NCBI GenBank assembly: GCA_964036045.1
Contig: OZ038378.1
Coordinates: 146,010,001 to 146,074,000 of the forward strand
Reading direction: 5' to 3'
Length of the DNA stretch: 64,000 bases
From: Eutreptiella sp. 'Long Island Sound 2002'
Lineage: Eukaryota; Protista; Euglenida
The position numbers were made by a program, and so were the translations under genes. A model generated the notes under the pieces. That model had not been told where the DNA came from. It was given only the letters and a program-made list of their open reading frames with translations, and did not search any database. Position 1 is the stretch's first letter; each line of letters starts with the position of its first letter. This document shows, piece after piece, positions 44,811 to 62,779 of this stretch.

Positions 44811-45655
44811 GCAGGGGGGGGGGATGCTGGAAATGAGGCGCGAACCAGCTTTGGTGCTGCAGTGCGAGTGCTGCCTTAGGGAGGGGGGGGGGTTGACGGG
44901 GCGCGGGCAGGGACACAGTGGAAAGCAGTGTGAGCAGCGGCAGCAGCAGCAGCGCCACTGAGTCGGGTGCAGCCCGAGGGGGGGGGGGGCGGGGTTTGGC
45001 GGGGCCAGGGGGAGATGGGCCGGCTGAAGGTATGGTTGGCTTCATCTGAGTGGGCTCTGGTTCGCGCCGGTGTTGCGTGGGAGGGGCTGGCGGCGCAGCA
45101 TGCGCAGGAGTTGATGTCGGCCCTCCTCTCAGCACACGAGGGGAAGGGCAAGCAGGGGCAGGGGCAGGGGCAGGGGCAGGGGCAGGGGCAGGGGCAGGGG
45201 CAGGGGCAGGGCGCAAGCAGGAAATGGGAGGAGGTGGAACGGTTCTTGTCGGCGTCACCCCCTTGCCCTCCCACAGGCGTTGCAGGGATGCATGATGTTG
45301 GCGGCCAGGGGGCGGGGTGGGGGGACCGGGAGGTCGTTCGTCTGGCTTGGTCTTGGGTGGGGATGCTGGGGGCAATTGGGAGGCGGCGCTGGTGCGGATG
45401 CACGTCTCCAGTTCCTCCTCCAGAATCCTCAAGCACACTTGCCACAGGTCCACCCACGCACCAGCCAAATTTCCACATGTTGGCTTGGAGGGGTGGGTTG
45501 GAGTGAATACACGTAAAATAAATAAATGGATGAATAAAATAAAACAAAAACAATTAAATAAATATAGAAAAGGAAAGCGCGTACCATCCTGACGAACGTT
45601 CCAATGTTCTCAACAGAAACTCCTGCAAGAGTCTGTCCACGTGCAATTCCTTCTG

Positions 45656-46747
45656 ATGGCGGTGGCGGCTGAGCCAGCTGCCGTCCAGTGGGAGCCGCCC
45701 ACCTTCAAGAAGCCTGTCTCAGCCAAGGTTCCGCTCACGGCGTACGAACCGGCCTACGTGGCGCGTAGGAAGCAGGTCGGGGAGAAGATCTTGAAGCTCA
45801 AGGACGGACGGCAGCTCTCCTACTTCACCGAGGGCGACCCAGCGGACCCGGCAGTGCTCTGCCTCCACAGTCTCGGCTTGTGCAAGTACCAGTGGCTCTT
45901 TCCCAAACCGGTGCCTGGGGTGTTCCTCATTGCAGTCGATCGCCAGGGGCACGGCAACTCGAGCCCCTACCCGCCAGGCCTTGTGCGGCAATTCCGTGAC
46001 GACCTGCACGAGTTCGTGGAGCTGCTTGACGCGCTCCATGTCGACAAGGTTCATGTGACTGGCTGCTCGATGGGGGGTTGCTGGGCGATCATGGTCGCCG
46101 CTGCGTTGGGCGAGCGCGTCTCTGCCTGCGCTCCCTTGTGTGCCTTGTCCGATCCGTGGAATCCCAGCGTCACGACAGCCGAGCAGCGCAAGAGCCTGTG
46201 TCCTCAAGGCGTGATGGCACTTCTCAGCTTGGGCGACTTTGGATGCAACTGCAAGGGCGGCCTGATGCGCTGGATTATGGGCATGTCGTTCAAAAGCTAC
46301 CCAGACAAGTCAAAGGACCCCGGCTTTGAGTCCATATACAACACTTACTTCAAATATGGCGATCCCAACAAGAAAGAGCTGCAACAGGACTTCGCTCAGA
46401 TGGACGCAGACCCCTATTTCGTGACCGCCATCCTCGACTGCAATCTCAACGGCCTCAACAGCAAGCACGCCGGCGTGGTCGAGCAGGTGCGCTGTTTCGG
46501 CAGGCAAGGGTGGGGCTACGATCTTCGCGACATCAAGTGCCCGACGTTTGTGTACCACGCGGAAAAGGACGCTGAGGTGCCGATCAGCTGCGCGCAGCAC
46601 AACAGCTCTGTAATCCCGGGGGCCGAGCTCGTCATCGTGCCGGAATACGGGCACTCGACCATCCTGATGTTGGGGCCGGAAATCATTCTCGCGCTCGTAC
46701 AGAAGCGCTCCTTCGCGGTAGGAGGAGGTTTATTGACAAGACTGTGA
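45656..46747 (+). CDS. Alpha/beta-fold hydrolase (Abhydrolase_1-like), intronless, 363 aa
   Basis: LKDGRQLSYFTEGDP, LIAVDRQGHGNS, nucleophile elbow GCSMGG, Asp in HAEKDAEVP, His in EYGHS; uninterrupted GC3-rich ORF. Confidence 0.92.
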   Translation: MAVAAEPAAVQWEPPTFKKPVSAKVPLTAYEPAYVARRKQVGEKILKLKDGRQLSYFTEGDPADPAVLCLHSLGLCKYQWLFPKPVPGVFLIAVDRQGHGNSSPYPPGLVRQFRDDLHEFVELLDALHVDKVHVTGCSMGGCWAIMVAAALGERVSACAPLCALSDPWNPSVTTAEQRKSLCPQGVMALLSLGDFGCNCKGGLMRWIMGMSFKSYPDKSKDPGFESIYNTYFKYGDPNKKELQQDFAQMDADPYFVTAILDCNLNGLNSKHAGVVEQVRCFGRQGWGYDLRDIKCPTFVYHAEKDAEVPISCAQHNSSVIPGAELVIVPEYGHSTILMLGPEIILALVQKRSFAVGGGLLTRL

Positions 46748-47409
46748 TGAAGAGGTAAGCTCATCTCGCTTTCGCCTGGCGCCAGTCGTAGGAGGCGGAG
46801 GAGGAGGCGGAGGAGGATCAGGAGGTGTATTTACAAGAGGTCGCCAAAGAGGTAAGATCAACTCGCTTTCGGGGGGAAGGCAGATCAGTGTGTCCAAAGC
46901 AGTGTTGATAGCACCTGAAGCGAAGGTACCACGGCAGACCTGTTTAGGGGTCGTGTCAGGCGGCCCCACTATGGACTCAAGGCTACAACGCCACCACAGA
47001 CCCCAGGTGACCCAGGTGTAGTGAAGCCCGACACACACATGTACCTGACATGTGCTCACTGACACACCCTCATGCACGTGTCGTACTCTGATGTACTGCT
47101 TGCAAGCGATCTGAGCCGCATGTCACACAGCATCTGTCGCATTCTCTGCACAGATTGCGCATTGGAAATTCCATTGCGTGGCATTATTTTTTTTCACATG
47201 CTTTAGTAAAGGTTTGCTGTACAGGATCTGAGATACATAGATAAATTCAATTAGATCTGAAATTAGTCCAGTTGACAATAAAGTTAAAGATCGATCGCGT
47301 GCTGAATAGAGATATTCTAATGTGTTCGTTAATCCGCATTACTGAGAGAGTGCGAGCAATATATAAAGTCTGAGCGACTGGAATTTCATGTTATGTATGT
47401 ATGCTACGT

Positions 47410-48018
47410 ACGGCGTACGAACCGGCCTACGTGGCGCGTAGGAAGCAGGTCGGGGAGAAGATCTTGAAGCTCAAGGACGGACGGCAGCTCTCCTACTTCA
47501 CCGAGGGCGACCCAGCGGACCCGGCAGTGCTCTGCCTCCACAGTCTCGGCTTGTGCAAGTACCAGTGGCTCTTTCCCAAACCGGTGCCTGGGGTGTTCCT
47601 CATTGCAGTCGATCGCCAGGGGCACGGCAACTCGAGCCCCTACCCGCCAGGCCTTGTGCGGCAATTCCGTGACGACCTGCACGAGTTCGTGGAGCTGCTT
47701 GACGCGCTCCATGTCGACAAGGTTCATGTGACTGGCTGCTCGATGGGGGGTTGCTGGGCGATCATGGTCGCCGCTGCGTTGGGCGAGCGCGTCTCTGCCT
47801 GCGCTCCCTTGTGTGCCTTGTCCGATCCGTGGAATCCCAGCGTCACGACAGCCGAGCAGCGCAAGAGCCTGTGTCCTCAAGGCGTGACGGCACTTCTCAG
47901 CTTGGGCGACTTTGGATGCAACTGCAAGGGCGGCCTGATGCGCTGGATTATGGGCATGTCGTTCAAAAGCTACCCAGACAAGTCAAAGGACCCCGGCTTT
48001 GAGTCCATATACAACACT
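47410..48018 (+). pseudogene. 609-bp partial duplicate of the hydrolase (= 45737-46345) between 65-bp direct repeats
   Basis: Only difference noticed is ATG>ACG (GVMALL vs GVTALL); direct repeats at 47341-47405 and 48016-48080. Confidence 0.92.
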
Positions 48019-50012
48019 GAGAGAGTGCGAGCAATATATAAAGTCTGAGCGACTGGAATTTCATGTTATGTATGTATGCTGTACGCATGGAGAGTTCCAA
48101 CTGGACGTCCATGCGTTGGAAAGCCTCTTTGGCAAGTGCCTCAGAACTCTCCCCAATGAATGTACACAATGTGTGACTTATGCCCATCGCCGGTTCAATT
48201 GCCATGTCTCTTAGAGAGGAGCATGGCACGGTGAGCCGCCATCATGTGTGAGCGAGCCGCCCGACCTGAGGTTCAACCAGGTCTGGGTCGGAGAATAAAG
48301 GTGCACTTGATCCAGAATGCAGAGTGCATGGCCTCAATTGCTTTTATGTGTCTTTTGCTTTGTTTTGTATTGTGTTGTTTGGGTGTTTGTGGTTATAGGT
48401 TAGTTCCAGTTTCACAAAATATTTTCTTAAGTGATATTTTTTATTTTATGTTTTTCTCAGATTTTGCTCATGTGTGCCCCAGCACCCAAAATATGAGCCC
48501 ATTGAAATGTAAATCGTTGTAGAAAGAAATATGTTGTCTTGTCCAAGCTGGCATTTATGAGTATTATTAGCGGAGAAAACATGTCCCGCAGGAAATTTGT
48601 GAACTTTTACGCAAGCAGCACTTCTTCAGCAGCTGGGGAGCAATACAGTTTTCCGGGCATATAGCTGCGCTGTCCATGTACAACAAAAATGTATCGTGGC
48701 GGTGGTCCTTATATGCAATAATGTAGATGATGACAGTATTTATAACATATTCGGTTTTTGTTCCCATGTCAAGAGCTTTTGTTCTGAGTCTTTGTGATCG
48801 GAAAGTGTGAAAAGTATGACAGCAACCATGTCAGCAATTGGGTCAACAATGTCACCAACCATGTTAAGCACCATGTCAACAGTGTTGCGAACCATGTCAA
48901 GCATAGCAACAATGTTATCACCCATAGAATGGTGGGCACTAACACCTCATTGGTTCTGGCAGGCGTCTCTTTTGCCTTTAGTGAATAATGTTCCGTGGTT
49001 ACCCCGTTCGCTGGTGGAAGGGTCGGGTTTTCAGAGTGTGTCAACGGTTTGCTTTTGAGGCTTTCTTTACTAAAACAGATATTCTGGTATGTATTGAGGT
49101 TGCTAAGCGCCATGTGTGCGAGTCCGAAGGTGCTGGGCCTGATTCTGGATCTGTTTCGTGATATTATGTTGTTGTCGTTGCTATTAGAGTGCAAGAGCCA
49201 GCACACGAAAGGCGGGGCTGAGCTGGCAGATGCACTCGGATTGCGGGTTAGGGAGGGATGTCGTGTTTTTTGATCACACAAGCGAATTTTGGTTGTGCAT
49301 TTGCAGGGACGGGCATTTTATGTGTGCTGCTACAGTAGGTTACGAGCTTGATGTGTTGCTCAATTTGCCACTTGATGCTGTATACTAAATGCCCGTGGTT
49401 TTCCTGCCCTGTGCACCTTCACCCGGAAAGTGTCAGAGAGGTTTGGGTATGGTGCTTTCGGGGGTGCATGACATTGGTATGGTGCGAGCTTGTGTACATT
49501 TGGTGACATGATGTCCTGTCCTCAATACTGTCCGTCTATTCGATTGTGGTCTGCACTTAGCTTCCCATGTTCAATTGATTTTGGCTGAGGAGTTGTGCTG
49601 GTGCTGATCGTGCTCTTGTGAGTTGGCTCAAATCGCTAGTGCCAAGTGTATCTAAAAAGTGCCTTGCCCACGCAATATCCGACCACATTGTCCTAGCTAA
49701 TATCAATCGCACGGTTACAGAGTTTCTCATCCAACAACCTGGTGGGAAGGACTGATGAAACACTCCCTCCTGAAATACGGCATGCCCCCAGCCCCGCATC
49801 GTGAAGCCATAAAGCCATAAATCTAGCGAAGGACACCAAATGGGCCCACGTGTTTGGGCCCACTTGAGGCATTTGCTCTTGCTTGTATCCAAATGATTTG
49901 TGTTGTATGTCACGTTGTTTTAGCCGCCACCTGAACACACAAAGCGCCTTTATGCTGACTGTGCTCTCTGCAGCTTATGGAATCAATGTCTGGCTGTATG
50001 TCAATCATGGAA

Positions 50013-50222
50013 TCAATGTATGGCTGCCGGAAAGTGATGAGATTATGCACCATGGACAATTATTATGCAGTGTGCTGTGTGCATAATCTCATCAGTTTCT
50101 GGTAGCCATACGGGTGCATAATCATTGTGCAGGGTGCATAATCTCATCACTTTCTGGTAGCCATACGGGTGCATAGTGATTGTGCAGGCTGCATAATCTC
50201 ATCAGTTTCCGGTAGCCATACG
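50013..50222. repeat. ~55-bp tandem repeat (3 units) plus one inverted unit
   Basis: GCATAATCTCATCA(G/C)TTTC(T/C)GGTAGCCATACGG three times from ~50080; inverted TATGGCTGCCGGAAAGTGATGAGATTATGC at ~50019-50048. Confidence 0.8.
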
Positions 50223-51619
50223 GCCAGGCCATGAGGGATTGGGCCTCCGCTTGGACGGTGAGGCGATCTGATGGAAAGAAGGCTACGGCGAGAGAAGTTG
50301 TTGGGATCCCTTTCTAGACCCCCGCTTATGGGCGTCAGGTCTCCAAATGATGGAAGGAGGGTGAGGGTTGGGATGTGGGGTTCATGGTGTGTATCTACCC
50401 CAGGCAATCATCTTGATGATTCGTGGTACATCTTGGCCTTGACCCACAATTGACAAGACAAGCAGCGCCCAAATATTTGCGCCTTTGCGAGGCTGCCCAA
50501 TTTCCCATCCACTCATCCTCAGACAATATGGACAATGTGTGTCGCGGCTCAGCGGCATAATATTTCAAGTACTGTTGGAATGCCAAAGTAATTTTGGAGG
50601 GTGGCGACCATCGTCAATCTATGGCCAAGCAATGGCAGAGTGAATCTGAAGGGTGACAACCATCGTCACCCTGTGGCCAAGTAACAGCAAACGGACGCAG
50701 ACTATGGCACACAAGTGAGGAAGGTAGAACGGCAGAAGGGTGATCAAGAGTAATCGTGATGAGGCCTACTGGCTCGATTCTGACCTGAAACCCAATCAAT
50801 GGGGGCACCAGTGGCGCCGTTAGAACGACGTATGGTGGCGCCTAAGGGCCCCTTGCTGGACAGCATGAGCAATGTGTGTCTGTACCCACCCATATCAGGG
50901 GCATGTTTGTTGAGTGCACGGATCAACACGATAGCTATTGCTTTTTGTTGGTGGGTACATCGCAGCTCTGCCGCGTTGAGACCTATTTATTGTACTGCTG
51001 AGAATGCCAGAGTGATTCTGGAGGGTGACAACCAACCATCGTCGATCTATGGCCAACCAAAGGCAAATGACCAGAAATTGACAGAACCAACGCCTCGTGT
51101 TGCTGGACAAGGGTGTTGCTTACGTGTTGCACCATGCGTGGTGCATGCATTAAGACATGGTGTACTATTCTCAAATCCAAGGGGCAAATATGCTACAAAG
51201 GCCATCAGGCTCAAATCAGCTTCCTTGACACACAATATGACCCGCATCTCAAAACCAAGGTAGCAGACAGCACACATAGCATATAGTAGGACAAATTGAA
51301 AAAATGCACTGAGAATGCGAAAATTGATGGAATCAACGCCTCGTGTTGTCTGGACAAATCCACGTGCTTTGTAGCGATTGCTTTGCATTGTTTGGAATGT
51401 AGATGTGACACTGGCTGCCATCAACTTGCTGCCTCCCATATCCCATCCGCTAAGCAAGAGCACGAGGAAACTACAAATTAAACGGACACCAACATTGCAT
51501 CTCACGACAACCTTGGTACAACAAGGGGTCATGCAGCCATCTCAGTCCTCCTTGCTTGGGGACCTTGATATATTAAGCGACGCCTTCCTGCTGTGGGGAC
51601 TCGATATAGTAGAGGTTAT

Positions 51620-51856
51620 GTAGCCACTTGAATGCCTACGTTTGGCGTGGCTAGTGAATAAGTTCCATTGGTCTGTGCACAATGCGCTTTTGCATTTAGT
51701 GGCAGGTCTGTTACCCCCCTCCCCCGAGGGAACATGGGAAAATGTTCCCCCTCATGTGTGGACCATTGTTGCTACCAAGAGAGCTGCCATTCAAGATGAT
51801 GGTAGGGACGAGGTTGATGTCTGTGTTTGGTGCTGTCCACAGCATTCCACCACACA
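51620..51856 (+). pseudogene. Third, highly degraded Harbinger-like transposase C-terminal remnant
   Basis: [42 protein letters not shown] aligns with YGPWEHLLPHVWTHQSKSAATQDEVEDEAEVCVLCC*KRST of the 2.4-kb copy; similarity ends just before the spliced-leader motif. Confidence 0.75.
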
Positions 51857-51865
51857 TTTTTTTTC

Positions 51866-51892
51866 ACTTTCTGAGTGTCTATTTTTTTCTCG
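51866..51892 (+). other. Genome-encoded euglenid spliced-leader (SL) exon relic
   Basis: ACTTTCTGAGTGTCTATTTTTTTCTCG versus the Euglena gracilis SL as recalled, ACTTTCTGAGTGTCTATTTTTTTTCG; followed by AACC, not the GT donor expected in an SL RNA gene. Confidence 0.88.
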
Positions 51893-51924
51893 AACCAACT
51901 TGCCCTGCTGAGCTTGCAGAACCA

Positions 51925-54900
51925 ATGCGAGCAAGAACCATGCTCCGAGGAGTTGTATTCATTTGTTTGTTGACATGGCTTGTGGCTGCAACGACAACTC
52001 CAACGGTGACCTCCACGCAAAGTCCAACAGAAACCCCATCAACCACGCCAAGCTCAACCCCGTCTAGTACGCCAAGCGCAACCCCAACAGCAAGTCCATC
52101 CGCAACCCCAACAAGTACCCCGTCGTCAACACCAACCGGGACGCCGTCACCATCACCAACCGCGACGCCGAGTGGAACCCCAACAGGCACACCCTCACCA
52201 ACACCCTCCGCCACGCCGAGTGCAACCCCAACAGGCACGCCATCAGGCACACCCTCACCAACACCCTCGGCCACGCCGAGTGCAACCCCAACAGGCACGC
52301 CATCAGGCACACCCTCCTCCACACCCTCGGCCACGCCGACCAGTACACCATCACCAACCCCATCAAGCACTGCAACCCCAACAGCAAGTCCATCCGCAAC
52401 CCCAACAAGTACCCCGTCGTCAACACCAACTGGAACGCCGTCACCATCACCAACCGCGACGCCGAGTGGAACCCCAACAGGCACGCCATCAGGCACACCC
52501 TCCTCCACACCCTCGGCCACGCCGACCAGTACACCATCACCAACCCCATCAAGCACTGCAACCCCATCACCCACGCCAAGCCCAACCCCGTCTAGTACGC
52601 CAAGCGAAACCCCAACAACAAGTCCATCCGCAACCCCAACAAGTACCCCGTCGTCAACACCAACTGGAACGCCGTCGCCATCACCAACTGCGACGCCGAG
52701 TGGAACCCCAACAGGCACGCCATCAGGCACACCCTCACCAACACCCTCGGCCACGCCGAGTGGAACCCCAACAGCCACGCCATCAGGCACACCCTCACCA
52801 ACACCCTCGGCCACGCCGAGTGGAACCCCAACAGCCACGCCATCAGGCACACCCTCATCAACACCCTCAGCCTCGCCTACCGGTACACCATCACCAACCC
52901 CATCAAGCACTGCAACCCCATCACCCACGCCAAGCCCAACCCCGTCTAGTACGCCAAGCGAAACCCCAACAGCAAGTCCATCCGCAACCCCAACAAGTAC
53001 CCCGTCGTCAACACCAACTGGAACGCCGTCGCCATCACCAACTGCGACGCCGAGTGGAACCCCAACAGGCACGCCATCAGGCACACCCTCACCAACACCC
53101 TCGGCCACGCCGAGTGCAACCCCAACAGGCACGCCATCAGGCACACCCTCACCAACACCCTCGGCCACGCCAAGTGGAACCCCAACAGGCACGCCATCAG
53201 GCACACCATCACCAACACCCTCGGCCACGCCGAGTGCAACCCCAACAGGCACGCCATCAGGCACACCCTCCTCCACACCCTCGGCCACGCCGACCAGTAC
53301 ACCATCACCAACCCCATCAAGCACTGCAACCCCATCACCCACGCCAAGCCCAACCCCGTCTAGTACGCCAAGCGGAACCCCAACAACAAGTCCATCCGCA
53401 ACCCCAACAAGTACCCCGTCGTCAACACCAACTGGAACACCGTCACCATCACCAACTGCGACGCCGAGTGGAACACCAACAGGCACGCCATCAGGCACAC
53501 CCTCACCAACACCCTCGGCCACGCCGAGTGGAACCCCAACAGCCACGCCATCAGGCACACCCTCATCAACACCCTCAGCCACGCCTACCGGTACACCAAC
53601 CCCAAGCCCAACCAGCACTGCGACACCCAGCCCAACTCCTTCGCCCACACCAACAGTAACTGCATCACCAACTGCAACCCCGAGTCCAAGTCCCACTTCC
53701 TCACCAACACCCTCACCAACACCAACAACAACAGCCTCCCCGAGTCCAACCGACACCCCAACCTACACATCGACGCCAACACCTTCGGCGACGCCAACAC
53801 CTACGCACTCTCCCACGCCGACCTCGTCTGCTACCCCGAGTGCCACCAACACGCCAACATTCACATCGACTCCAACCCCGACGTACACTTCGACTTCGAC
53901 GCGTACTGTGACGGCGACTTGCAGTGCAACCTCTACCCCTAGTGAAACCACAACCCCAACAAGTTCAGAAACTTCTACAATGACAAGGTCACCCACTCCT
54001 ACTCAAACGTCATCGACCACACCGACGCCCACACGGACGCCCACACCAACGTCCACTGCAACCTGCACATCAACACCAACATCAACTTCCACTTCCAGTG
54101 CGACCGGTACAGCAACTCGCACTTCCACATCTACAGGAACGTCAACACCCACACGGACCTCAACATCAACTTCATCCGCAACACCTAGTCCCACGAGAAC
54201 GGCAACTTTCACAAATACTCCGACGCCATCGCGGACAAGAACAGCGTCTCCAACATCAACTTCAAGCCCAACCACGTCGCAAACACCAAGCCCGACTGCA
54301 ACCTCGTCGCCAACCAGGACCTCGACCCCGACCCCAACCATGACTTCTACTGCCTCGGGCACGCCCACAACTACTGCTACCCAAACAGGTACACCCTCAC
54401 CGACACCCACCGCAAGCTCAACCCCCACTCCCTCGGTGACACCTACGGCCACTGCAACGGTGATTCCCACATTTACTGACACCAGCACGCCAACGCCAAC
54501 CCCGACTCGCACTGCAACCTCGAGTCTTACACCCACAGCCACCGCAACCTCAACATCCAGTGGAACGCGCACATCCACCATCACTCGCACGGGCACTGCC
54601 ACAATGACTGTGATTCCTACTTACACAAGCACCCCAACCCCATCACCGACAGCCACCCCAACTCGCACTTCGACTGCGACCCGTACGCGCACTGCTACAC
54701 AAACGCGGACCACAACATCTACCCGAAGCTCGACGCCGACCCCTACGCTGACGCCAACATACACACGGACAGCAACGAGGACATCGAGTTCCACATCTTC
54801 AGCTACTGCGACGAGTCCCCAGACTCTCACAGATACAGCCACAATCACAATGTCTCCCAGCCTCATCATTGTTAATGATGTTGCCCCTGGGTTTGCTTCC

Positions 54901-56724
54901 ATCCTGAAATATGATGAGCCGAATCAATTCGTCATCACTTTTGACCGAGACATTGCTGGCGGTGTCACAACCGCAGACGCAGCTGCTCGTCTACGGATTA
55001 TGCAGAATGGAGCCTCACTTGCCAGTGTTGCAGTTGGTGATTCTTCTATCAGCATTTCAGGGACCAGGCTGACTTACACTGTAGTAGCATACACTTTCAG
55101 TGCAGATGCTGTAGTCACAATCTCTTTGGATCGTGGATTTGTTGGAGAAGCCAATAATCTCCCATCGTATTTCAATGGGATGAAAGAAGTTCGGTACAGT
55201 ACATGCTGTCTACCAACAGAAGAATCCAGCAATTTCACCTTTGCGCTGGACAGCTCAATTGAGACGCTGAACACCCAGGGCGGATTAAACAAGATCTGCA
55301 ACATATTCGGCAGAGTGCTGGCGAGTGTGCCATGCAGCAAGGCGGATATTTTTGTCCAACCCTCCGTGCCAATTATCACTGTCCGATACTTCGATTTGGC
55401 TTACAACAGCAGTGTCTTTTTGAATGCAGGTATCCGAGAGGGATTTGCGGTTGGGGCTTTCAGTAGATTGTTTGTGGCAGAGGGGTGTGGGGACATTCTC
55501 CCAGGCTCTGTTACTGAGTATTATGGTGAGCGCTACATAATGGAATCTGTGGAGGTATTCTTGAGCCCCATTTCACAAGGGTCCGAAACTACGGTCACTG
55601 TGACGGCCTCTTTGACCTCTGGGTTTAACATTGGAGATACTTTTGAGCTGTATTTGCCGCTAGCAATGCAGCTGAGCTACCCCATGAAAGCCACGTTTGG
55701 CAATTATACTGGAGTTTGGCCTAGCAATCACATTAACAGCCCATACTACGTGTTGCAAGGCACAACAGGCACGAGTATCTACTTCAACACGACTGGTCTG
55801 GTCTTCAGCATTCCGGGTGACCGCACTTTGACAATAGAGATCTCTAAGGGAGTGAAAATGCCAACTTCCTGCAGCGATTTCGGACCCACCGGATTCATTT
55901 CTGTGTACACGTTCAAGCGCTGGGACGCAAACTATCAGAATTTGTTGGATTTCAAAGTTTTTGACCCCGCTAACGACGGCTGTGCGAGTCCTGCCGAAAC
56001 AGTCGGCGTTCCGGATCCCGACGTTCTTGGAACTACAGAATGGTACGATTTCTCGCCGACCACAGGCATCCAGGGCAACGCCATCACCCTCACGTTCTCT
56101 GGGTTGCTTTTTTCGAACATTCGAGCCCCCTACGTTGCGAAGGTCGCTGCTTTGCCGGCTGATAAAACTTGCCGTGGCACAGCACTGGGGACGCACGCGG
56201 GAGAAATCAATCCGACCACCAGAAACATTACTTTTGTGCTCCAAGCAGTTGGGGTGTATGATATCTGCATCATGCACCGCTCCAACTGGGAGCTGGCAAA
56301 GGTTTCTCTCAGCATCAATCCTCCAACTGCAACCGAATTCCTCAACATCCTCGCGGTGCCAACTTCAGCGTCGCAGCCGTCACTGCAGGAAGCAGTTGCT
56401 TTGAACAACAATCTCCAGCCCTTCCAGACAATTATCACACCGCCCCGGCCATTTCTGCTGGAATTTTCTTCATGTGAAGCTCTGCTGAAAGCTGCCCCAG
56501 CTTTTTGCGGATGTTACATCCGAGGCGCATCAGGTAATATATTATCTCCTGGGGTCACCCTGGTGGCGCCCACATCCCTCAACACCGAGTTTGTGGCCAC
56601 AATTTTCGGAATCCATGAGCAAGTCCGAATGGGATGCTGTGCAACCAATCCATATGCCACTGAGTCCACTATCCTAGATTTCAATCAATTTGTGTTGGGG
56701 ACCAAGTGGGGTCTGTGCATGTAA
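51925..56724 (+). CDS. Secreted mucin-like Thr/Ser/Pro-rich protein (1599 aa) with C-terminal beta-rich, Cys-containing domains; intronless, probable retrogene
   Basis: [22 protein letters not shown] looks like a signal peptide; ~970 aa of T/S/P repeats; ~620-aa non-repetitive C-terminal region with no obvious TM segment. 4800 nt without a stop. The supplied ORF start at 51742 lies inside the transposase remnant. Confidence 0.9.
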
Positions 56725-56845
56725 AGCACGACTCCTTTCTGCACGGCGATCGATACCAGTCCCCCAGCACTGAGGATGTTCGGCCACAGTCGTTTGTTTT
56801 TTCCTTTTCCCCATGGGACACGATTTGGCTGAGATGTGTACGTCC

Positions 56846-56908
56846 TAGAGGGGGGGCCTTGCCGCAGCCTAAGGCGGCGCTTAAAAGCGGAGGCAAGGCC
56901 CCCCTCTA
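56846..56908. repeat. Hairpin-forming inverted repeat (17-18-bp arms, TA at both ends)
   Basis: TAGAGGGGGGGCCTTGCC (56846-56863) and GGCAAGGCCCCCCTCTA (56892-56908). Confidence 0.75.
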
Positions 56909-57315
56909 CGGTCGCAACGGCGCCCCTTAGAGCCGTTGGGGAGGGTCTGTTTTCCAAAGTTACAGTCCAATCTTTGGTGTGACCTCTTGACCATCCAGTG
57001 GCCAAAATAAGCACTCAGTGGGTGATTTTGAGACATGTAGTGTGGAGAATGTTGTATGTATGTTGTTCCTTGTATGTTGTTTACACGCAGGTGCAAGCAC
57101 AAGTGTATGCATGCACGCTCAGAACCATGCATGTGCACAAATACTGGCACATTGATTCTGCCCATACTACACACAGGCAATGTACATTAACCTGCAGTGT
57201 GCATCTCTACCCCATATTTGCTGCTATAGCTCCCGAGCAGCAGTTTGTGAATGGTCGATGATTTTTTCCCACGACCTACAGCCACCACACCGATAGTAAC
57301 ACAACGAACAGACAT

Positions 57316-60300
57316 CTGAGCCGTGGCTATGACCATATGCCTGTGTCACGGGGGTATATGCGAGCTCAGCATGCATTGCTCATGGCCTAAGCAGAAACCG
57401 TCACTTTCTGTTTTGGAAATTTACTCAGAAGGTCGGATACTGAGCTTGTCCTGTGTGTCTGCTACCTGGACAAGGTAGTATTATTTGTGCATTGCTGTGT
57501 ACTGCAGATTTCTTGCATCCAAGGCACTCTACTGCACCCTGTATCACGCAAAACACTTCATTGTTTTCGCAATTTCAGCCATGAATGTTCATCATATTGA
57601 CACGTACCCAGCTGGTGCTGTTGTCGATTTCTAACCTTCGGGGGGCAGTATTGTGCCTGCCAAGATTGTGCTTGCCACAAGGGCTGGAGCCCACTGTCAA
57701 GCCCCCTGCCAAGGCTGGTCCCAAAGCTGCCAAACCTGGTGCCAAACCCTCAACGAAGATTGCAGCCAAACCTGCTGCCCAGTTGGCAGCCAAGTCTGCA
57801 ATTAGAGAGCCCATTCCTGTGGCCCCTGTTGAGCATGTGCAGCCCTTCAGAGTCAAATACTCCCGCCCGAAAAAGTGGCATCCAGAGCCTGTTTCTGAGC
57901 AGATCTGAATATGCATCCCATCAGGAAGTTCCTGGCCCCTTGGGCATGGTGGATCAAGGCATCATTCGGCACTGATCTTGTTTCAGCTGCAGTGCAGCTA
58001 GTCAAAACAATGAACTGTGAGCCGTAGCTATGACCATATGCCTGTGTCACGGGGGTATATGCGAGCTTAGCATCCGTTGCTCATGGCCTTGCAGAACAAT
58101 TGCCCTTGCATAATAAGCGGAATCGTCACTTTCTGTTTTGGAAATTTACTCAGAAGGTCGGATACTGAGCTTGTCCTGTGCGTCTGCTACCTGGACAAGA
58201 TAGTATTATTTGTGCATTGCTGTGTACTGCAGATTTCTTGCATCCAAGGCACTCTACTGTACCCTGTATCACGCAAAACACTTCATTGTTTTCGCAATTT
58301 CAGCCATGAATGTTCATCATATTGACACGTACCCAGCTGGTGCTGTTCTCAATTTCTAACCTTCGGGGGGCAGTATTGTGCCTGCCAAGATTGTGCTTGC
58401 CACAAGGGCTGGAGCCCACTGTCAAGCCCCCTGCCAAGCCTGCTCCCAAAGCTGCCAAACCTGGTGCCAAACCCTCAACAAAGAGTGCAGCCAAACCTGC
58501 TGCCCATCGCAGCGATCTGCGCATCGCTGGTCGTTTGGCTATCCCGCGCAGCTTGTATCGCCACTTGGTTCGGACGCTGGGGGGCTTCCGTGCGGCCCGC
58601 AAAGAGATAGGTTCATACCAGGACAGGGTGCTGGACTCTGTCACTGCTGCTCTGGCCTCAGCAATCCCACCCAAGTCTAAGCGCCCCAATGTGTTTGTAT
58701 CGGCCGATTGGGATTCACCTACCCCCTTGTTGTAACTGCCCCCATGTTTGTCATATGCATGCCATCATGGCTGGCATATAATTTCTGACTGTCACGCTGC
58801 GACCTGTGGCGGGCTCTGCCCTGGGCTGTTCTTATAGCCGACGCGAATGCCACTAACTCAGCTACGCCCCCTGTCTCTCCTCAGGACATCCTGACATACT
58901 GGCGATCACTCTAGGGGCTTTTCTCTGGCGCTGCCACCACTTGATCCGCTATGTAAGCCCTCACTGATTACCATGCTCACCTGCCTCTTGGCCGCACAGA
59001 TGGACAATCACTGTCTGTAGAGCTACACGCTGATGGATGCCAGCACTGCATTTGCTAGTGCCTCAGAGCGGTGCCGCATACCCCTGCAGCGCCTTCCCTC
59101 GACGACCGTGATTACTCTGGTCTATGTCGCGCTCAGCTTGCATATAACGGGCCGTCTGCTCATGGTTCATGTCCTGCATTCGCTAGCTGGAACAAGCACA
59201 ATGTGCGACGCTTCCTGACCTCCCCGGCGCTATCTGGCGCGGTTCAATCGTGTTGCTGGTTTTTTTTACCATTGCGATCTGCCAATCAAGGGTGCATTGG
59301 GTGAATTGTCAGATGGATGCTGCTGATTTTGCTGCCCCCGACACAGTGACCTGGGTGCAACAGGGTTGCCTTGGATGAGATGGCTACGTCGATGAGCCAT
59401 GGAATTCTGTTGGGACGGTCGTCCACGTGGTGTGAGAATGCTGGGTATCTGGGTGAGATAGTATGCTGTTTCGCCAGTTTGGCCTCATCGGTTACTCCGG
59501 GGGTGCCCACGCCCCGCCGTCTCTTCAACCTTGTCCCTCTTTCACGTCCAGCACAACACAACAGCCAGTTGCGTATAATACCGCCCCCCCCTCCCGTGCA
59601 CACGCCTGTGTGCACCCCCGATCCCCCTCTGTGTCTCTATTTTTTTCGCCAACCGTTGGCAGGTTGGCCCTCCCATGGTACACCGACCCCCACCCCTACA
59701 CCATGCGAGTGGAATGCCATTTTCTTCTTTCCCCTGTGGGCGACCCACCGCGCCCTGGTCGCCCACTGCCACCCCCCCCCCCCCCCCACCGGTCCCCCTT
59801 GTCTCCCGCCCTATGTACCTCTGTTTTCCACGTATGATGGGATACCCGCTCAGGACAGGAACCCGCCCAGACAGTACCCCCAGATTATCTGCCACTGCCC
59901 CCGGGCATGGAGTATGGGGCGACCACTTCTGTGATGTCCACTTTGTAGCATAATTTACTACCTTGCATCGTCCCGCCGCCGCCGTGACCCCAGCCTGCCA
60001 ACCTGCTGACCCTTGACTTGGGGATGTGGGTGACTCAATGTATATTGGGCTGGCCTCCTGAGAACACTGCAGCTGTGGCTTTGGACTTGTATTACAAAAA
60101 AAAAAAAAAAGAGTGCAGCCAAACCTGCTGCCCAGTTGGCAGCCAAGTCTGCAATTAGAGAGCCCATTCCTGTGGCCCCTGTTGAGCATGTGCAGCCCTT
60201 CAGAGTCAAATACTCCCGCCCGAAAAAGTGGCATCCAGAGCCTGTTTCTGAGCAGATCTGAATAAGCGGAATCGTCACTTTCTGTTTTGGAAATTTACTC

Positions 60301-61939
60301 AGAAGGTCGGATACTGAGCTTGTCCTGTGCGTCTGCTACCTGGACAAGGTAGTATTATTTGTGCATCGCTGTGTACTGCAGATTTCTTGCATCCAAGGCA
60401 CTCTACTGTACCCTGTATCACGCAAAACACTTCATTGTTTTCGCAATTTCAGCCATGAATGTTCATCATATTGACACGTACCCAGCTGGTGCTGTTCTCA
60501 ATTTCCAACCTTCGGGGGGGCAGTATTGTGCCTGCCAAGATTGTGCTTGCCACAAGGGCTGGAGCCCACTGTCAAGCCCCCTGCCAAGGCTGGTCCCAAA
60601 GCTGCCAAACCTGGTGCCAAACCCTCAACGAAGATTGCAGCCAAACCTGCTGCCCAGTTGGCAGCCAAGTATGCAGCGTGCGTGTAGTGCGGCTATTTGG
60701 CAACATCTATGGGAACAGTGTTGTGGTGTCGGTTTTGTCCTTTCACGGCGGGCACCTCAGCAGATGTACTTTTTTGGGACTGCGAAGGGCCACAGGCCAA
60801 GTTTCCTTTCAAAGATTATGAAGCAGGTGCCACATTGTGATCTTGATTGTGCTATATTTGTGGAAAGGAGGGGTGTTCATACAATTTTTGTGGGTAAAGC
60901 GCCTGCTGTCCTTAGGGGGAGGGGGGGGGAATCAGGAGGCTATCGGTGTACTCGTCACAAAAGTAGTTCAAAGCACATGTGCGGTGCAACCCCCTGCACC
61001 ATGCCACCATGCTCCTTTCTTGGCCTTTTTTGATGCCGACATGAACGTGGTTTTCATACTTGGCAGTGGATGCTATACTCTTTAGATAGGGTCCTCTGCT
61101 GGTTTCCAAATGTCGATTTTTTGGCATGCTGATAACCCAGGAACATGTGATGAGCGTGCATTTGCTACCACGTAGATGGTATCCGATATTGGGCATCAAT
61201 TCGTGGGGTTGTGGGAGGTGCAGACCTCAGGCCCACACAATGCACTTCATTTGGCCACACGTCCAATATCATGCACTAATTTGGGGCTTGGTGGGAGACT
61301 GGCTCAGGGCTGAGCTCATAGGTAGGAAAAGCAAGCACGAATATCCACGGGCGGTCCCTGCCCCACCCTGTCTGCCTTTTGGTTTGGTGTCCAGCTCTGC
61401 AATGGGTCTTGGCACAGGATGTGCATAACTCTGGTGGGAACATGTGTTTATCAACCCTCTTTTGGATTCCTTGTTTCTCATTCCAACAATGAGATGGGTT
61501 TGCTGGGATGCTGATGTCAGCATCACCACCAAAAGATTCACCCAGCACAGAAGAGCACAAATCATGAAAGCAGACAGGCACTGGAGTCGATTGATTGATT
61601 GATCCCTACCTCCCCCACACAAACACAAAAGGCCCACCGATGTATCACCAGAAGTTACCGTGCCAGATAACCTAAACAACCCACCATCCATCACCCATCC
61701 TGGCCCCTTGGGCATGGTGGATCAAGGCATCATTCGGCACTGATCTTGTTTCAGCTGCAGTGCAGCTAGTCAAAACAATGAACTGTGAGCCGTAGCTATG
61801 ACCATATGCCTGTGTCACGGGGGTATATGCGAGCTTAGCATCCGTTGCTCATGGCCTTGCAGAACAATTGCCCTTGCATAATAATTCCTGTGGCCCCTGT
61901 TGAGCATGTGCAGCCCTTCAGAGTCAAATACTCCCGCCC
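57316..61939 (+). repeat. Cluster of shuffled segmental duplications (modules A-E)
   Basis: The same blocks occur at 57316-58506, 60108-60670 and 61699-61939 in different orders; includes a K/A/P-rich pseudo-ORF KPPAKAGPKAAKPGAKPSTKIAAKPAA. Confidence 0.88.
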
Positions 61940-62779
61940 ACGGGGGCCGCCGCCAGCCAATGTGTCACCTTCCGCATGCTTCCCCCATTAGATCTTCTAC
62001 ACATCGGACCTTAGAACGTTTGATTGCCTGTAGTATTTGCCCCCAGTGCACCACAAGTGGGTCGCTCTTTGGTTGGTGCTACTGTGCACTGGGCATAATA
62101 ACGTGCCCATGTCCACAAATGGCAACCTGAAAATTGCTACTGGCATTTTTTTTCGTTGCAGTTCTCGACGTTTGCGGCCTTTCCCAAGTGCCATCGATAT
62201 TCCTTTCATTCTCTACACACAGCAACATACAACAGCAAGCACAACAAAAAGCGCAACAGCAACGTTTGAAAGAATGATTGTTGAAACTCATGGCCCTAAG
62301 CCTGCTTCAAAAAGTCTCAGCGTTTATCTCCTTCATGTGGCAGTGGATAAAGCTGACGAAAGTGATGGTGTAGTATATAATGCTTAAAACTGTTGGCCCC
62401 AGGCCTGCTTGAAAAGAGTTAAGCATTCTCTAGTAACACACAAAGAATCACATGGAACTGAAATTGCCTGAGACCGGACCCGCAAAGGCAACATACTTCC
62501 CCACCTTGCCTAAGGGTGGGCAGGGCGCATTGGGCAACTTACACACAACTCATACCACATTGACGTTCTCTAGACGCGAAGCAAGAACGGGGCAAGAGGC
62601 AACAGAATCAGCGAAAAACACAAAGCCCCACATGGTCCTACGCGTCACGCCACATGTACACCTCAAATATTACCCCCGCACCAACACGCAAATGTTGCGT
62701 GCCCATCACATGCCACTGTAGACTAAAGAAACCATGCAAAAAAAGGCAATATGTGTGCGATTTGGTGAAAAATGCTCGA

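Follow-up and report, generated by a model that had tools for sequence, protein, structure and literature searches.

A genome-encoded spliced leader in front of an intact intronless gene: a probable retrogene of a trans-spliced euglenid mRNA

The window analysed here, a stretch of 64,000 nucleotides (nt) from contig OZ038378.1 of GenBank assembly GCA_964036045.1 (positions 146,010,001 to 146,074,000 of the forward strand, deposited under Eutreptiella sp. 'Long Island Sound 2002'), contains a long intronless gene preceded by a copy of the spliced leader (SL), the sequence that euglenozoan mRNAs receive by trans-splicing. The gene is an open reading frame (ORF) of 1599 codons at positions 51925–56724, with no internal stop; this ORF and the other parts of the locus described below are on the plus strand. 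Upstream, the 27-mer ACTTTCTGAGTGTCTATTTTTTTCTCG occupies positions 51866–51892 and is followed by AACC, with the ATG at 51925 located 32 nt further on. The arrangement, including the AACC rather than GT after the leader, can be read directly and is as reported in a first-pass annotation made from the sequence of the window. The 27-mer matches the published SL of Euglena gracilis, ACTTTCTGAGTGTCTATTTTTTTTCG (PMC6242988; the identical sequence serves as a primer in PMC5654406), over its full length, with one extra C (T7-C-T-CG compared to T8-CG), which bears out its earlier identification as an SL. The number of exact SL 18-mers expected in the window is 0.00 (100 shuffles). The identical SL relic is present in ctg10381 of the European Nucleotide Archive (ENA) assembly ERZ25074135.

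An intron-bearing counterpart of the gene was found in the same ENA assembly. Contig ctg10381 was tied to the window via an exact 368-amino-acid (aa) hydrolase ORF, and the proteins on ERZ25074135 let the rest of the genome be searched. An exhaustive representative search with the 559-aa C-terminal region of the encoded protein returned six short ORFs (69–201 aa), each matching over 40–58 residues at 73–93% identity. The six matches fall in consecutive parts of the query, and follow the same order on a single 1.73-Mb contig, ctg10784. The parent gene was mapped by walking this contig via neighbouring called genes and by BLAST alignment to the window. Window positions 51893–57280 align to 16 exons of a ctg10784 gene spanning 96,983 nt, with identities of 87% in exon 1, 93–96% in most coding exons, and 82–92% in the 3' untranslated region (UTR). 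All 15 parental introns, 135 to 25,287 nt in length, have GT..AG junctions, and the window is seamless at each of the corresponding positions, i.e., after 51977, 54388, 54890, 55060, 55314, 55440, 55554, 55744, 55867, 55998, 56125, 56222, 56335, 56524, and 56660 (the one after 55314 was placed manually in the alignment). The Thr/Pro-rich exon of the parent is a single open frame of ~3.2 kb, and the exons in its C-terminal half are 97–502 nt long, which fits the 0.1–0.6 kb of coding sequence per intron that the first-pass annotation gave for other multi-exon genes of the window. Parent and copy sit on different contigs of one assembly. The first-pass annotation had proposed a check for an intron-containing parent paralogue; the ctg10784 gene, with its 15 GT-AG introns in 97 kb, is such a paralogue.

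A second homologue search revealed a 574-aa protein (P0025), whose coding sequence lies on six JGI and Logan contigs of transcript size. The transcript contigs (L013–L018) are 100% identical to ctg10784 exons, including the 3' UTR, and the parent is thus expressed and spliced as inferred. They also indicate that the parental 3' UTR is 1678 nt long and harbours a 16th intron of 7 kb. Including the full 3' UTR, the parent covers ~105 kb (L007/L006/L003/L001/L002/L004, ctg10784 ~1,203,180 to 1,097,857). Two of the contigs, L017 and L018, diverge near the 3' UTR junction, which suggests alternative processing of the parent.

The sequence around the acceptor reads ...TTATTGTCCTGCAG/AACCAACTTGC in the parent and ...TTTCTCG/AACCAACTTGC in the window (in a longer alignment, ...GGCTACATGTTATTGTCCTGCAG/AACCAACTTGCTCTGCCGAGCTCGCAGAACCAATGCGAGC and ...GTGTCTATTTTTTTCTCG/AACCAACTTGCCCTGCTGAGCTTGCAGAACCAATGCGAGC, respectively). 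In the parent, a pyrimidine tract leads up to CAG (CCTGCAG/AACCAACTTGC) and the homology begins at the very next base; the 5' UTR of the copy (51893–51924) is homologous to parental exon 1 from that base onwards. The pyrimidine tract and CAG are the trans-splice acceptor of the parent, and the SL in the window is attached precisely at this point. The ATG at 51925 is the start codon common to copy and parent, and the first AUG past the trans-splice site. Towards the 5' side, the same frame continues across the SL and stays open as far as an ATG at 51742 (1660 aa); this longer ORF has no exact database record because the gene caller split it.

To our knowledge, a structure of this kind, with the SL at the acceptor and no introns, occurs only in a trans-spliced, fully cis-spliced mRNA; hence, we take the window gene to be a reverse-transcribed copy of such an mRNA. 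The segment 51866–57280 is very probably a retrogene, i.e., a DNA copy of a mature mRNA from this large multi-exon E. gracilis gene or a close paralogue of it. The mRNA would have been trans-spliced with the SL and stripped of all introns, and then reverse-transcribed into a new locus. The earlier proposal that the gene is a retrocopy of a mature mRNA is upheld by the position of the SL at the parental acceptor and by the loss of every parental intron.

The 3' UTR of the retrocopy occupies positions 56725–57280. Homology to the parent gene and its mRNA stops at 57280 (...TTTTTTCCCACGACCTACA), 341 nt into the parental 3' UTR. A 9-nt word, CCACCACAC, is found at 51847–51855 and again at 57282–57290. 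It is the sole 9-mer common to 51780–51870 and 56725–57600, and its downstream copy begins 2 nt past the independently mapped end of homology. We consider the pair a candidate target-site duplication (TSD). The repeat adjoins the copy at the 3' end and is 10 nt away from the SL at the 5' end; by our own estimate, the chance of finding such a repeat within ~15 nt of both mapped ends is ~1 in 1000. Past the break, the parental mRNA reads CCTCACAATTACCAC (CCUCACA), which resembles the target CCACCACAC. Reverse transcription may have been primed internally in the 3' UTR by microhomology between CCUCACA of the mRNA and the nicked target CCACCACAC, which would lead to a 9-nt TSD and no A-tail. Neither a paralogous empty site nor other copies of the flanks were found in the window or in the fetched loci.

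The 3' UTR of the copy also contains an extra segment of ~230 nt (56840–57068, boundaries approximate) that is not in the parent gene or the parent mRNA alignment, and that must be either a later insertion in the copy or a deletion in the parent. A near-perfect GC-rich hairpin is found in it at ~56848–56910. Read-set depth reaches 500–1600 from the extra segment up to 57349, compared to ~40 elsewhere, so that part of the segment is a high-copy element; ~200 kb of Euglena DNA that was fetched contained no other copies. At its end, the 3' UTR bears no resemblance to the (CCTTA)n-tailed short interspersed nuclear element (SINE) of the window, and a search of a plasmid collection with the 3' UTR gave no match.

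A 10-nt filler, ATTTTTTTTC, which can be read directly at 51856–51865, separates the SL from the upstream copy of the candidate TSD. The filler equals SL nucleotides 16–25 and differs from the sequence upstream of true SL RNA genes (...TAC/ACTTTC). Possibly, it arose through a template switch as reverse transcription finished. In metagenomic loci, true euglenid SL RNA genes have the form ...TAC/ACTTTC...TTTTCG/GTATA. These comparisons bear on an explanation without retroposition, in which a fragment or pseudogene of an SL RNA gene (SL RNA genes are multi-copy) happened to lie upstream of an intronless gene that arose by DNA duplication and intron loss, or by horizontal transfer. In the window, however, the SL is preceded by TTC and followed by AACC; it has neither the TAC nor the GT donor and GTATA intron start of SL RNA genes, and Rfam detected no RNA gene anywhere in the window. 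Moreover, the SL adjoins the very base that follows the trans-splice acceptor of the parent, which effectively refutes a chance juxtaposition, and homologues of the protein are confined to euglenids in our homologue search. We find this explanation scarcely credible. A related idea, that the filler and SL derive from an SL RNA transcribed further upstream, was ruled out, as TAC precedes the SL at 4/4 metagenomic euglenid SL RNA loci.

Loose ends of contigs around 51859–51893 in one read set (X1) come from other loci, where TTTTTTC is followed by the SL and the upstream DNA is different; G followed by CTTTCTGAG, and SL followed by TTTTACAG, are also seen. These variants imply that further genomic SL copies exist, at least one of them also after a T-run and C.

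The SL is a multi-copy word at which short-read unitigs break, and the sole assembly with the locus, ERZ25074135, is essentially that of the window. Both facts would suit an assembly artefact, in which a cDNA or transcript read was joined into the assembly and the SL and intronless gene are not chromosomal. Indeed, the ctg10381 locus (L005) and the window share 99.99% identity across 21.1 kb (35644–56747), with only two homopolymer lengths differing, far upstream; ctg10381 is thus of the same assembly lineage, and lends no independent support. The reads, however, speak against an artefact. Depth in X1 and X3 is even (~25–60), both in the unique flank upstream and within the gene. Of seven sampled junction 31-mers, each of the four read sets X1–X4 contains five, and any 31-mer in 51836–51925 necessarily includes flank and SL. 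Copy and expressed parent differ at 143 of 2322 nt (~6%), with 13% divergence in exon 1, and the copy is therefore not cDNA contamination, since a contaminating cDNA would match its gene. Finally, a contig described below, in which the relic stands downstream of a fresh SL, requires the relic to be genome-encoded. An artefact is thus very improbable. Two read joints, 51888>53533 and 51888>53714, were set aside, as their 22-nt sides fall in low-complexity sequence.

Among X1 and X3 contigs, mosaic unitigs that carry only some parent-specific letters were found at 54598–54843, 54922–55061, and 55585–55803, and one of them spans the lost-intron position 55744/55745. Therefore, there must be a third allele or another copy without introns; possibly, the mosaic unitigs reflect gene-conversion tracts.

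Over 774 aligned codons, nonsynonymous (dN) and synonymous (dS) divergence between copy and parent were 0.037 and 0.149, respectively (ratio 0.25, NG86); the YN00 ratio was 0.39. Differences between the two genes are most numerous at third codon positions (81, compared to 34 at first and 28 at second positions), and stops are present in neither. Across methods, dS is 0.11–0.15, so the duplication is not recent, and a 4.8-kb ORF that is still open at this distance argues for constraint. These data point to purifying selection having kept the copy open since duplication. The first-pass annotation had called the copy either recent or selected: the intact ORF and the dN/dS of 0.25–0.39 favour the latter, while dS contradicts a very recent origin.

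Alternatively, the locus could be a dead processed pseudogene: a genuine retrocopy, but silent and unconstrained, whose ORF is open merely through youth. The parent mRNA is present in six data sets of transcript assemblies, and a long retrocopy contig is found in none of the six; in addition, the parent branch could carry the pairwise dN/dS. However, dS does not indicate youth, and we estimate that neutral drift over 4.8 kb at half the distance should have left several stops or frameshifts, of which there are none. In addition, contigs identical to the retrocopy, and not to the parent, are found in two libraries (one RNA, the other labelled 'RNA?'), one of them with a fresh SL. A dead copy therefore seems improbable to us, if less so than an artefact; the retrogene is probably expressed below the level of its parent.

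The contig with the fresh SL (X5) is 435 nt long and belongs to an E. gracilis library of 2013 whose label is 'RNA?'; one of its ends is T7 vector sequence. In this contig, CTATTTCTTTTC is followed by window positions 51875–52034 with 0 mismatches, in a region where the parent diverges by 13%. Of the 12 loose letters, 11 agree with SL nucleotides 14–25, compared to 9/12 that agree with the genomic sequence upstream. If the G at 51875 is taken as the last base of the SL, the RNA is a fresh SL followed by TGTCTATTTTTTTCTCGAACC. Trans-splicing would thus use the AG within the relic (51874–51875) as acceptor, and the 5' UTR of the mRNA would keep a 17-nt truncated relic; the X5 contig shows this in part. 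The relic acceptor is preceded by a strong pyrimidine tract, TTTTTTTTCACTTTCTG, made up of the filler and the 5' half of the SL. With a pyrimidine tract and AG inside the retro-copied SL, the copy brings its own 3' splice site. According to the mechanism that we propose, the retro-copied SL supplies this site (a pyrimidine tract, then CTTTCTGAG), and a read-through transcript from upstream would get a fresh SL at 51875/51876.

In the second library, an estuary metatranscriptome (X6), contigs identical to the retrocopy cover, among other parts, 56488–56645, where the parent differs at 20 sites, and one contig crosses 57280 into the flank as far as 57345. Several X6 contigs are 99–100% identical to the locus; either E. 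gracilis was present in the sample or there was carry-over between libraries.

Several points weigh against the interpretation of the locus as an expressed, constrained retrogene of the ctg10784 gene. The evidence for a fresh SL is one 435-nt contig with 12 loose letters, one of which is mismatched. A 5' contig of X6 reads TTTTTTTC/GAGTGTC, two bases off the junction, a position that does not fit a canonical AG acceptor. A pairwise dN/dS cannot place the constraint on the retrocopy branch alone. The type of the X1–X4 read sets is unrecorded, that they are DNA is judged from the even depth, and they may stem from the very sample that was assembled and so not be independent; the SL itself is bridged by no listed unitig. 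Given the third allele or copy in the mosaic unitigs, the ctg10784 gene may be a sister of the true parent. At the 3' side, neither the stop codon nor the end of homology is followed by poly(A) (there is no A-run of at least 5 in 56725–57869), an absence noted in the first-pass annotation and due to truncation of the copy inside the parental 3' UTR. The same annotation had also found no TSD after the stop; a candidate can now be named, although it is only 9 nt long and is set off from the SL by 10 unexplained nucleotides.

The protein encoded by the retrocopy has a hydrophobic, signal-peptide-like N-terminus, ~1040 aa of mucin-like Thr/Pro/Ser repeats, and the 559-aa Cys-containing C-terminal region. 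No Pfam match was obtained for the whole protein or for the C-terminal region alone; a protein-atlas feature search gave weak unnamed matches only, and a homologue search limited to proteins of 880–2800 aa found nothing. Homologues with 25–37% identity, all uncharacterised, are present in Eutreptiella gymnastica, Euglena longa, and Entosiphon sulcatum. A structure model of the C-terminal region (mean predicted local distance difference test (pLDDT) score 66.5, predicted template-modelling (pTM) score 0.48) consists of tandem beta-sandwiches, and in Foldseek it gave generic tandem beta-sandwich matches (immunoglobulin-like, adhesin-type) with template-modelling (TM) scores <0.3. The C-terminal region may thus be composed of extracellular beta-sandwich modules, a medium-confidence prediction in which the likeness to surface adhesins is at the level of fold class only. 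In our reading, the product is a putative secreted or surface glycoprotein of mucin-like character.

Tandem or dispersed units of ~700–725 nt (families D3–D8), with a Lys/Pro/Ala-rich frame, occupy 57317–61940, starting 36 nt past the end of the retrocopy. One ~0.7-kb unit is split by a classical retro-insertion at 58509–60111, 1.2 kb downstream of the retrocopy, which has an A15 tail and a ~25-nt TSD, AAGAGTGCAGCCAAACCTGCTGCCCA; the genome thus also makes the poly(A)-tailed form. A decayed SL-like word, GTGTCTCTATTTTTTTCG, lies inside this insertion at 59631–59648, ~1.1 kb from its 5' end, and the insertion may itself have been copied from the transcript of an SL-retrocopy that was already there. 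Upstream, a second uninterrupted ORF at 45641–46747 encodes the 368-aa alpha/beta-hydrolase, with no SL relic seen in front of it. A 99.8%-identical partial copy of the hydrolase gene is located at 47401–48020, bracketed by a ~64-nt direct repeat (47343–47406 and 48018–48080), and a 55-nt unit is repeated three times in tandem at 50068–50232 (family D9).

We tentatively suggest that in euglenids, in parallel with dinoflagellates but independently of them, the pyrimidine run and AG of the SL (CUUUCUGAG) could make retrocopies that land in transcribed DNA self-sufficient, by providing a ready trans-splice acceptor and thus a capped, translatable mRNA; our confidence in this generalization falls a little short of even. 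If true, mRNA recycling would be a general way in which genes of the 2.4-Gb genome of E. gracilis are duplicated and lose their introns, and SL trans-splicing would be seen to promote retrogene survival in a second, convergent case. Retrocopying through the SL may help explain the variation in intron density among E. gracilis genes. In practical terms, the SL 16-mer outside of SL RNA genes is a simple genome-wide marker with which retroposition in Euglena can be dated and counted, and, for annotators, genomic SL-like words and tandem SL pieces in cDNAs are real biology, not artefacts.

The retrogene can be compared with two known kinds of retrocopies. As in processed retrocopies of the LINE-1 type in animals and plants, a spliced mRNA has been copied, without introns, into a new place in the genome; a short direct repeat, here a candidate TSD, flanks the insert. 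5' truncation is usual in LINE-1-type retrocopies. The euglenid copy, in contrast, retains its whole 5' end with the cap-adjacent leader, is truncated at the 3' end, and is without poly(A).

The closer parallel is with the retrogenes of dinoflagellates that are tagged with the dinoflagellate SL (DinoSL), the 'recycled' processed cDNAs of Slamovits and Keeling (2008) and Song et al. (2017), as reviewed in PMC6050394. Full-text literature searches found no paper describing SL-tagged retrogenes in euglenids, in agreement with the expectation of the first-pass annotation, and the SL is unmentioned in either E. gracilis genome paper (PMC6366073, PMC11252322). What is new here thus appears to be an SL-tagged retrogene of the known dinoflagellate kind in a lineage from which it had not been described. 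According to the review (PMC6050394), DinoSL retrogenes share with the euglenid locus a genomic SL relic directly 5' of the gene, an origin by retroposition of a trans-spliced mRNA, and transcripts that carry a fresh SL ahead of the relic, and many of the copies stay functional. The differences are that Euglenozoa are a different phylum, with an unrelated SL of 26 nt, and that dinoflagellate retrogenes often keep introns and lie near their parents (PMC6050394), whereas here the introns are all gone and copy and parent are on separate contigs. Beyond the DinoSL cases, a parent with 15 introns over 97 kb has been identified. Until now, SL-tagged retrogenes have been regarded as a dinoflagellate speciality; the euglenid case, documented with its parent, acceptor, intron removal, apparently constrained ORF, and putatively re-leadered mRNA, indicates that the same route of gene birth is at work in a second, unrelated trans-splicing lineage.

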